Shown here: positions 9,301 to 12,300 of the stretch, in pieces
How positions within the stretch are numbered: position 1 is the first letter of the stretch
Layout: each line of letters starts with the position of its first letter
NCBI GenBank assembly: GCA_002269645.1
Contig: NIVC01000835.1
Span: forward strand, 371,523 to 435,522
From: Macrostomum lignano
Lineage: Eukaryota
Direction of reading: 5' to 3'
DNA: 64,000 nt
The notes under the pieces: model-generated
The model's input: only the letters and a program-made list of their open reading frames with translations
Told to the model about the DNA's origin: nothing
Databases searched by the model: none
Program-made: the position numbers and the translations under genes

Positions 9301-12300
9301 ATGCACACGATGCTACTATGAATAGCATGCTTAAATCGTAAATGACACACGGGGATATTGGTAACAAAATCGTCTACCTCGAACTTGCTGCTCCAGAGCG
9401 GTGATCACGGTGACAGCTTGTTGAAGCACCCCCAGTTTAGTCTGGGGCTTCTCGTTTTTCAGGTGCATCATGGTCATGCGGCCCAGCTCCTTGAATGCTC
9501 CGTTGATGTCCCGAACTCGAACTCTGACAGATGATTTATGACACGGCAAACGATTGCAAGCAATTGAATTTAACAGAAAAAATCATGCATAGGATTCAAT
9601 GGAAGTTTAAGGGTGAGATCGGACTGAGAGGAATGAGATTAGACTTAGATAGGAAAGTGAGATTGGACTGCGAGGAGTGAGATTAGACTTAGATAGGAGA
9701 ATAAGATTAGACTGGTATAGGAGAGCGAGATTGGATTGGGAGAGGAGAGAAGGGTGAGATTGGACTTAAAGACAAGGACAGGTTGAGATTGGACTGAGAT
9801 TGAAGAAAAGAGTGAGATCTGACTGAGAGAGTATGTTGAGATTGGAGGACATAAAGAAGACAGTTAGGCATGCAGTTAACAAAGGCAGCAATGGCAACTT
9901 GGCACTTTGAGGAATTTTTACTAAAGGCTGAAAGGATAATTTCCTATAATTGGGCCCGCCTCGCTGCCTCGAGTCTACTTCAAAAGAAAACTGGGCCTGC
10001 ATGGAAATTGCCGGTGTTATCAAAAATTGCCCAATTATAGCAAAATTGGCAGCCAATAATTTTCCAATTTTCACGAAGCCCTGTTCTCGAGGATAATTTT
10101 ATCCAATTGTTTGAGGGAAAAAAAGTTGCACCAAACACAGACGCGGGCGGGAAATTGAGGGAACGACTTCATATTTGGGGAGATTGGGGGAGGATAATTT
10201 TTTATACAATTTTTAGCACGATTTCTGCTTTCACTTTTGCTTCTCGTGGGGGCAAAAAACATCTGCTGCTCCCCCTAGCCAGGAAGTTGTCGGGCAATTA
10301 GTTCACGGAGTTGAGAAATATACCGATTATATCCCGAATTCTGTAATGCTTATATTTCCCCTATTATTGCGCATGCAATTGTATTGTAAAATATTCTTTT
10401 CTTCTGCTATAACTTGGCTACAACTAGGCCAGTCTCAGCTTTAAAAAGACAATTCTATTCAAATACGAGTATTGTATCCTGTTTTGCGGAACCCGGAACT
10501 TCCAGGCTTAGCTTTAGACACTGTTAGCAGAGGTTAGCAACTGGGATAAAGGATCAAACGCAGTCCATGCGACACTGCAAATTCCACTGCTGTGCTTGGT
10601 CACCTCTGACTTGCTGCTCCAAGGCAGTGATGATGCCTACAGCCTGCTGCAGCACCATCAGCTTAGTCAGGGGCTGGCTGTTCCCCGTGTGCATATCGAC
10701 CATCTGCCCGAGCTCCTTGAAGGCGTCATTGATGTCTTTGACGCGGAGTCTTGACGCAGGAATAGCGGGCAGAGGTTCTGTAGCGTTCTGATTCAGGTCT
10801 GCCTAACAGTCTCATAGCAAACCCAATCACAGGCAGATCCACAAACTACATGAACACCTGATACAATATCTGCTCAACAATCTAGTCAAGATTTGCCCGA
10901 AGATTTATTCACAATCTACCCGAAGATCTACTCACAATCTACCCGAACATCTACTCACAATCTACCCGAAGATCTACTCACAATCTACCCGAAGATCTAC
11001 TCACAATCTACCCGAAGATCTACTCACAATCTACCCGAAGATCTACTCACAATCTACCCGAAGATCTACTCACAATCTACCCGAAGATCTACTCACAATC
11101 TACCCGAAGATCTACTCACAATCTACCCGAAGATCTACTCACAATCTACCCGAAGATCTACTCACAATCTACCCGAAGATCTACTCACAATCTACCCGAA
11201 GATCTACTCACAATCTACCCGAAGATCTACTCACAATCTACCCGAAGATCTACTCACAATCTACCCGAAGATCTACTCACAATCTACCCGAAGATCTACT
11301 CACAATCTACCCGAAGATCTACTCACAATCTACCCGAAGATCTACTCACAATCTACCCGAAGATCTACTCACAATCTACCCGAAGATCTACTCACAATCT
11401 ACTCAGATCTACTCAGATACCCACAATCTACACAGACCTACTCACAGTCTACCCGAAAATCATCTTGTGCGAATTCGATCAACTCAAAATCCGTTGAACT
11501 GTCCTAAATAAAAACGCACTCAAACTTGAGCAGATCGAAAACTGCTCAAAAAAAGGTCGCGCTCACCTCTCCCTGGCGTTGTTGGCATAGCGCCGGGCCT
11601 TCTCCCGCTGCTGCTTCTCCTCCGGGCTCAGCCCGAAGTCGTCGTCCTCGTCGTCGCTAATCGACGTCGCCGCACTGCTGGGCCCGCCGCGCCGTTTCAC
11701 CGCCTGGCCGACGCTTTTCTCCGACGAGGACGAGGCCATGCCGGACAGGGCGTGGAGCTGCTGCTGCACCATGGCGAGGCCCTTCGCCGTGACGCTGCCG
11801 ATACCGGCGCCGCCGTCGAATTCGTCAACAGCCGCCGACGGCGAAGCCTGCGACATCGCGGCGGCCGACTGGGGCAGCTTGGCCTGCTTGGCTGGCAGAG
11901 CGGAGGATCGAGTCTGCGACTGCTGAGCCGAGGCTGGCGGCAGAGTCTGCTGCTGCTGCTGCTGCTGCTGCTGCAGCTGGTGATGATGCTGATGATGCTG
12001 GGCCATGCTTGTACCGGAATGCGGGGCGCAGGCCGACGGCTGCAACACGATATTTGGAGGAAGATAGATTTATTGTATGCCTGTTTGGCTTTTCTAGAAT
12101 AGGGAGACTGCAATGACTGATGCACTGACAGACAGACAGACAGACAGACAGACAGACAGACAGACACTAAGACAGACAGACAGACAGACACTAAGACAGA
12201 CAGACAGACAGACAGACAGACAGATAGACAGACAGACAGACAGACAGACAGACAGACAGACAGACAGACAGACAGACAGACAGACAGACAGACAGACAGA

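Follow-up and report, generated by a model that had tools for sequence, protein, structure and literature searches.

Can an invertebrate switch the dimerization surface of its E-protein by alternative splicing, as vertebrates do with TCF3? The question is raised by a 64,000-nucleotide (nt) stretch of the Macrostomum lignano genome (contig NIVC01000835.1, positions 371,523 to 435,522, assembly GCA_002269645.1; hereafter the window, to which all M. lignano coordinates refer), in which an initial annotation made from the DNA alone had noticed two helix-loop-helix (HLH) exons, here called A and B, in an E-protein gene. Mutually exclusive splicing of TCF3 is textbook knowledge. E-proteins are obligate partners of tissue-specific basic helix-loop-helix (bHLH) factors, proneural and myogenic ones among others, so a change of their dimer surface affects many cell-fate programs; to our knowledge, splicing-based switching of this surface has been studied only for vertebrate TCF3. 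We conclude with good confidence that the HLH exon of the M. lignano gene is an inherited tandem pair, A then B, that exactly one of the two is usable in any in-frame mRNA, and that two isoforms are to be expected. It also seems fairly probable that a mutually exclusive A/B cluster was present in the single E-protein gene of the ancestor shared by flatworms, annelids and molluscs, that this cluster was later lost or expanded, depending on the lineage, and that the same exon was duplicated independently in vertebrates, pancrustaceans and a mollusc-like lineage.

By its matches, the locus is the 3′ part of the M. lignano class I bHLH E-protein gene (TCF3/4/12/daughterless). Protein searches were initiated with isoform A (132 amino acids, aa), isoform B (319 aa, low-complexity regions masked) and a 73-aa junction-spanning A peptide, and returned only matches of approximately 0.55 to 1.75 times the query length. 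The exon A isoform fragment was 100% identical to a UniProt M. lignano protein; the next matches were E-proteins (TCF3, TCF4, TCF12 and daughterless) from all animal groups, with E values of 1e-36 to 1e-45, and the Pfam HLH domain (PF00010). The bHLH chains of E2A and TCF4 in the PDB were matched with E values of 1e-19 to 1e-30. In tblastn searches carried out exon by exon, E values were about 3e-28 for an exon against itself and 1e-17 to 1e-22 against the E-protein HLH exons of other phyla, so the resemblance of these exons is not due to chance. The ERNLNPK block, which stands right after helix 2 and is encoded by positions 8635-8580, is kept with few substitutions at most from rotifers to vertebrates among the hits retrieved. 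When longer E-proteins were compared with the window by tblastn, no match to the N-terminal activation domains AD1 and AD2 (LH motif) was obtained; exons further upstream, at about 14.9-17.5 kilobases, are of low complexity, and minisatellites abound in the upstream region. The gene's 5′ end could be located elsewhere, or its divergence could be too great for detection.

The architecture proposed by the initial annotation, two 146-nt exons of the same phase between the exon ending in NARE(R) and the exon starting with ERNLNPK, can be read directly from the DNA (Table 1). Both exons enter in phase 2, leave in phase 1 and are flanked by AG and GT; they are identical at 100 of 146 nt (68%) and at 36 of 50 residues. 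The constitutive exon upstream of them encodes the acidic patch (DDEDDD) and the greater part of the basic region, through YANNARE, and closes with GCC AGG GAG AG/gtgagc (here and below, a slash marks a splice junction), where the last two nt (AG) open a split Arg codon. The acceptor at its 5′ end, at 12039 (ttgcag/CCG), is a prediction consistent with the reading frame and with UniProt model P0121. Since 146 leaves a remainder of two on division by three and the phases of A and B are identical, the in-frame C-terminal block can be reached only if exactly one of them is included. Translations bear out this logic, including the earlier claim that skipping both exons meets a stop within about 20 codons: double skipping gives 19 out-of-frame residues past the junction codon and then a stop inside the last exon, and double inclusion gives a stop 17 codons into exon B, approximately 95 nt before the last exon junction. 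The exclusion of one exon by the other is also not steric, as had been pointed out, because the intron that separates them, measured at 1080 nt, is too long. A and B are thus adjacent homologous exons of equal length and phase, with canonical splice sites and a frame that accepts single inclusion only, as expected in the genome for a mutually exclusive exon pair.

Table 1. Exons and introns at the 3′ end of the M. lignano E-protein gene, listed in the order of transcription (positions in the window).
Feature	Position	Strand	Boundaries and remarks
Upstream constitutive coding exon	11567..12039	minus	donor GAG/gtgagc at 11567, read directly
Intron 1, phase 2, 817 nt	10750..11566	minus	
Alternative exon A, 146 nt	10604..10749	minus	acceptor cctgcgtcaag/A, donor GAG/gtgacc
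Intron 2 (between A and B), 1080 nt	9524..10603	minus	
Alternative exon B, 146 nt	9378..9523	minus	acceptor catctgtcag/A, donor GAG/gtagac
Intron 3, phase 1, 742 nt	8636..9377	minus	
Last coding exon	8301..8635	minus	acceptor cttaacag/A, starts (E)RNLNPK, stop TAA 8303-8301

The two exons encode recognizably different versions of the domain. Exon B encodes the canonical form, here called B type, in which helix 1 ends with GRM and is followed by the loop LKNEKPQ and then by TKLG; in the A type encoded by exon A, helix 1 ends with GQM, the loop (TGNSQPL) is uncharged and helix 2 starts with TKLM. Altogether 14 of 49 HLH residues differ, 12 of them at the end of helix 1, in the loop or in helix 2 including its first turn, and the A type has uncharged residues where three charged ones stand in the B type. 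The initial annotation had described one basic region, or most of it, as shared by both versions. This is correct up to the glutamate that contacts the E-box, which is position 9 in the numbering of PMC8431614 adopted here. It does not extend further: positions 10-17, including contact positions 10, 12-14 and 17, lie within the alternative exon, and in this stretch the two versions diverge at position 11 (L/V) and at position 14 (K/R), which contacts the backbone. Residues of the loop and of helix 2 also touch the DNA backbone (PMC8431614).

If, as we infer, A and B are regulated as mutually exclusive exons in M. lignano, the products would be two E-protein isoforms that do not differ in their activation regions or in the basic region as far as the contact glutamate. 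An mRNA including both exons would be a likely target of nonsense-mediated decay, because its stop in exon B lies upstream of the last junction, and an mRNA lacking both would encode a protein without the HLH. The two HLH versions would then tune partner choice, dimer stability or contacts with the DNA backbone; a change in any of these is plausible, and the data do not discriminate among them.

Is the pair peculiar to M. lignano? We searched the genomic DNA around the E-protein genes of other animals with four M. lignano peptides; the labels “leech-like” (contigs L003 and L004) and “mollusc-like” used below rest on sequence similarity only. The tapeworm Schistocephalus solidus has an A and a B exon of 146 nt each, approximately 150 nt apart. 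Three tandem HLH exons of 146, 152 and 146 nt are found in Capitella teleta and three in each of the leech-like contigs, and Helobdella robusta (L006) has two clean 146-nt exons, A and B, followed by a divergent third. In the blood fluke Heterobilharzia americana (L010), a B exon is preceded by an A-like exon with a disrupted frame. The gastropods Lottia and Elysia have a single HLH exon of the A type, Limulus has a single B-like exon with the same two intron positions, and a gene of bdelloid-rotifer type is intronless in this region and encodes one B-like HLH.

Every spiralian A/B cluster begins with an exon of the A type, has the order A then B and shares the two intron positions. The cluster exons are flanked by AG and GT in the same phases, except for the third Helobdella copy and the Heterobilharzia A-like exon, and each of the other seven clusters or loci keeps the GT donor and the phase after exon A. 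The window conforms to this pattern, with an A-type exon (G[QHS]M and [SG]QP[LM]T[KR]LM) upstream of the B-type exon or exons, between NARE/ and /ERNLNPK. The lengths of the introns, on the other hand, vary widely; the distance from A to B, for example, is about 150 nt in Schistocephalus and 1080 nt in M. lignano. Judged from these comparisons, the phase-2 intron in NARE/R and the phase-1 intron after QQVR/ are old protostome introns, and it is the exon between them that has multiplied. Public annotations of the genomes with clusters of the Capitella, Helobdella, Schistocephalus and Heterobilharzia type use one exon only (P0086, P0103 and P0140).

Two of these loci deserve separate mention. 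The Heterobilharzia A-like exon, at approximately 10777-10922 of its contig, is one base out of frame in the assembly, which could be either the onset of exon loss in schistosomes or a homopolymer assembly error. The third HLH-like segment of Helobdella (14802-14953), which follows B, is strongly divergent and has no clean AG acceptor where one is expected; perhaps it is an exon copy in decay or put to another use.

We then compared the exon peptides with each other, in alignments of 49 residues with 47 and later 57 sequences analyzed by neighbor-joining (NJ) with bootstrap. The A-type set comprises exon A of M. lignano, the first exons of Schistocephalus, Capitella, Helobdella and the leech-like contigs, all mollusc sequences and several further contigs. 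Its members share a distinct signature. Helix 1 ends with Gln, His, Ser or Thr at the position where 34 of 39 other sequences have Arg. The loop residue before Pro is Gln in all 18 A-type sequences and Lys or Arg in all 39 others, and the residue preceding it is Ser, Gly, Thr or Ala in the A type and Asp or Glu, again, in 39 of 39 others. After Pro, the A type has Leu or Met and the others mostly Gln. The start of helix 2 reads TKL-Met in 17 of 18 A-type sequences, and another residue (mostly Gly, Thr or Asn) takes the place of Met in 36 of the 39 non-A sequences. The A-type sequences form a clade with 76% (47 sequences) and 71% (57 sequences) NJ bootstrap. The M. lignano A and B exons are sisters in only 0.8% and 0.1% of replicates, respectively, and those of Schistocephalus in none. 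Exon A of M. lignano is orthologous to the first cluster exons of Schistocephalus, Capitella and Helobdella and to the sole HLH exon of Lottia and Elysia; it is 73-76% identical to annelid and mollusc A exons, and the nearest relatives of its exon B, at 80-82% identity, are the second Helobdella exon, the Limulus exon and B exons of neodermatan or fluke type. The simplest reading of the trees is a single duplication before the split of flatworms, annelids and molluscs, after which B would have been lost in gastropods and duplicated again in annelids.

Alternatively, flatworms, annelids and molluscs could have duplicated the exon independently, each in its own lineage, and the shared A signature would then be convergent. 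Duplication of this exon is certainly known to repeat itself, in E12/E47, in crustaceans, in the two annelid B copies (B1 and B2) and on the mollusc-like contig L012, and the bootstrap value of the A clade is only 71-76%. We nevertheless consider separate origins unlikely, given that every cluster starts with A and has identical intron positions, that six signature columns are common to three phyla, two of them without any overlap with non-A residues, and that A and B of the same species are sisters in 0-0.8% of bootstraps. A recent duplication or an assembly artefact in M. lignano was rejected on other grounds: no more than 68% of the nucleotides match between A and B, and other genomes have the same arrangement.

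Shared descent of the pair leaves the question of whether both exons are retained for use. For the three exons of the leech-like contigs L003 and L004, comparison of the contigs gave ratios of nonsynonymous to synonymous differences per site (pN/pS) of 0.05, 0.07 and 0.07 at pS values of 0.68, 0.52 and 0.39, and the introns of these contigs are only 62-70% identical; in this related lineage, these values show purifying selection on both exon types. Between exon A of M. lignano and the annelid A exons pS is near saturation (0.71-0.78) and pN is 0.18-0.19. Both M. lignano exons keep an open frame, the length of 146 nt, the AG and GT flanks and all residues that are invariant in the HLH domains of E-proteins. 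The A type can be regarded as a fully competent dimerization domain, because the only E-protein gene of gastropods has it as its sole HLH. A long-dead exon would not be expected to look like exon A of M. lignano, and these comparisons provide strong, if indirect, evidence that both exons are functional.

It could still be that M. lignano uses only one of them and that the other is a recently silenced relic which merely looks intact. Loss of a single type did occur elsewhere, in gastropods (B) and, to judge from its disrupted frame, perhaps in Heterobilharzia (A); moreover, the acceptor of exon A is the weaker one (AAG) and the donors of both exons (gtgacc in A, gtagac in B) fall short of the consensus. 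Weak splice sites, however, are often found in regulated exons and are typical of them. Both exons are open, exactly 146 nt long and bounded by AG and GT, with the invariant HLH residues kept, and the 73-76% identity of exon A to its annelid and mollusc counterparts has persisted despite the near-saturated pS, whereas decay would be expected in a neutral relic of any age. We therefore regard a silenced exon as quite improbable.

Public gene models for M. lignano invite yet another interpretation. The UniProt entries A0A1I8JSA8, A0A1I8JQI8, A0A1I8IPN2 and A0A1I8FLQ4, which correspond to window positions 8301-12039, are artefactual: A0A1I8JSA8 fuses A and B into a double HLH by joins that are off the conserved exon boundaries, and the remaining models have frame-shifted segments or connect the upstream exon to the middle of exon B. 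Such models indicate that prediction software picked up both exons; they are not splicing evidence, and we rejected the double-HLH protein A0A1I8JSA8 as a real product, considering it a predictor artefact whose joins miss the conserved AG and GT boundaries. That the two exons are not strictly exclusive, either through an alternative 3′ end formed by A with retained intron 2, whose read-through frame is open for 17 codons, or through other splice sites that put A and B into one double-HLH protein, as in the in-frame join of UniProt model P0121, we consider very improbable, since the A/B and B/last-exon joins of P0121 miss the conserved boundaries and look like a predictor forcing an open frame, a genuine double HLH is found in no homologue of any phylum (the apparent cases, P0123 and P0131-P0133, include intron sequence), and the GT donor and phase kept after A in seven other clusters or loci would not be needed for an alternative 3′ end.

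Several points weigh against a working, anciently inherited pair in M. lignano. The A-type clade is drawn from 49 residues with 71-76% bootstrap, and convergence or gene conversion is formally possible. One exon type can be lost, as the gastropods without B and the out-of-frame A-like exon of Heterobilharzia indicate, so the retention of both in M. lignano is by itself no proof that both are used. Finally, the three protein searches described above, made in a collection of 5.8 billion proteins, returned for M. lignano only the genome-derived UniProt models and no transcript-derived protein.

How does the M. lignano pair relate to that of vertebrates? In TCF3, exon 18a gives E12 and exon 18b gives E47, and the two human exons are 74% identical at the nucleotide level (PMC6120717). 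Their splicing is regulated by hnRNP H/F, PTBP1 and an intronic conserved region (PMC6795145), for which there is no demonstrated counterpart in M. lignano. The two systems are alike in several respects: they affect the same gene family, consist of tandem homologous dimerization exons at a similar level of divergence (74% in human versus 68% in M. lignano), share the 3′ boundary QQVR/E in phase 1 and have a long intervening intron, so that exclusion is not steric. They differ at the other end of the exon. The TCF3 isoforms diverge approximately 26-29 residues before RER (P0026 versus P0100), and thus the TCF3 exon starts some 26-29 codons further upstream and swaps the acidic patch together with the whole basic region, whereas the M. 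lignano exons start within NARE/R. Unlike the A type, both E12 and E47 have a charged, B-like loop.

The initial annotation had stated that E12 carries ERLRV and E47 carries ERVRV and had seen a parallel in the presence of ERLRV in exon A and ERVRV in exon B. The statement itself is accurate: in a TCF3 gene model that has the two exons in their genomic order (P0123), ERLRV precedes ERVRV, the E47 chains in the PDB carry ERVRV, and this agrees with the exon assignment in PMC6120717. The parallel carries no signal, as the Leu/Val residue of ER[LV]RV varies within both exon types; this stretch reads ERVRV or ERIRV in mollusc A-type exons and ERLRV in sequences of the TCF4/TCF12 type. Across the sequences compared, the match with E12/E47 is a coincidence. 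In the trees, E12 groups with TCF4/TCF12-type sequences (81-86% bootstrap), and four vertebrate sequences group weakly (55%) and with neither A nor B. Orthology of A to E12 and of B to E47, or the reverse, was rejected, as E12 and E47 fall within vertebrate sequences and the 5′ boundary differs.

From the different 5′ exon boundary and the position of E12 and E47 among vertebrate sequences, it follows that the vertebrate pair is independent of the spiralian pair; judged on these two lines, the systems work alike but stem from separate duplications. The alternatives originally offered for the M. lignano pair, convergence with E12/E47 or an ancient spiralian feature, hold side by side: clusters occur in a cestode, a trematode, a polychaete and a leech, and both boundary and tree set them apart from TCF3. 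The tblastn searches of animal genomes with the exon peptides and the comparison of introns with TCF3 lead to the same picture, with identical intron positions in spiralians and a 5′ boundary unlike that of TCF3. Other spiralian clusters resemble the M. lignano one in intron positions, exon length (146 nt), A-first order and signatures, and annelids carry an extra B-type copy. Drosophila daughterless and the single-HLH genes of Limulus, rotifers and gastropods are orthologous and have the same bHLH and C-terminal block, but only one HLH exon.

The same exon appears to have been duplicated in further lineages. In the barnacle Amphibalanus amphitrite, two 146-nt HLH exons (L011, 14011-14156 and 14225-14370) lie 68 nt apart at the same intron positions, and the gene models of Homarus (P0131) and Hyalella (P0132) contain two HLH segments each. 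The first crustacean exon is chelicerate-like (KAQTKL), the second is daughterless-like, and neither has the A-type signature. This pancrustacean pair thus resembles the spiralian A/B pair in gene, intron positions and exon length, but the tree gives no support for a link between them, and it is probably a separate duplication. A mollusc-like contig (L012, ENA ERZ25069866) has two A-type exons (10081-10226 and 10274-10419) approximately 47 nt apart, near enough for steric exclusion, in what looks like a further independent duplication. With the vertebrate, annelid B, crustacean and mollusc-like cases, the HLH exon has been duplicated in tandem at least four or five times.

Insect sequences provided some additional observations. 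Insect-like and collembolan hits were of the second crustacean type only. In the gene model P0128 of the beetle Popillia japonica, the complete acidic-basic-HLH block is present twice, once with NNVRE and once with NNARE, and both versions of the basic region are also seen in separate insect-like transcripts (P0113 and P0115 versus P0080). There are hints here of alternative basic-region exons in insects.

In full-text literature searches we found no published description of alternative HLH exons in invertebrate E-proteins, including in spiralian and crustacean bHLH surveys, although such absence is not proof; the surveys report one E12/E47 gene in Capitella and two in Helobdella and do not mention exons or isoforms. 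The A/B cluster shares its principle and gene family with TCF3 splicing; its origin is independent, its exon boundary is a different one and its phylogenetic depth is large. For animals that have one E-protein gene, it provides a natural replicate, independently arisen, of the E12/E47 switch, and Macrostomum, Capitella and relatives of schistosomes are tractable models in regeneration or parasitology. If our reading is true, isoform switching of the E-protein dimer surface is recurrent in Bilateria rather than a vertebrate peculiarity, and the flatworm/annelid/mollusc ancestor had two versions of the universal bHLH partner, the canonical one with a charged loop and the A version with an uncharged loop. 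There are also consequences for annotation: present models either omit one of the exons or merge the two into a spurious double-HLH protein, and tandem HLH exons may be miscounted as extra genes in bHLH gene counts.

The introns of the M. lignano gene are filled with minisatellites, which create long spurious open reading frames (ORFs). Intron 1 contains a 23-nt minisatellite of 22.7 copies (10896-11415), intron 2 contains degenerate repeats of the AATCTCAC type (approximately 9613-9831) and intron 3 contains 22/108-nt tandem arrays (8738-9083). We considered pairing between arrays as a selector of the exon to be spliced, namely of the 23-nt array of intron 1 with the AATCTCAC arrays of introns 2 and 3, which by eye seemed partly complementary, and rejected it, as duplex energies were no better than those of dinucleotide shuffles (z of 0.43 and 0.06). 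A scan for inverted repeats gave nothing beyond short pairs such as chance would produce. The whole window is unusually rich in minisatellites, which also occupy 12127-12454, 8000-8270 and many other places, including a (GACA)82 tract and a 22-mer of 12 copies. On the minus strand at approximately 37500-43700, upstream of the E-protein gene, exon-like ORFs have a weak match (E = 0.004) to the organic cation transporter OCT2 of the SLC22 family; these probably belong to a neighboring gene.

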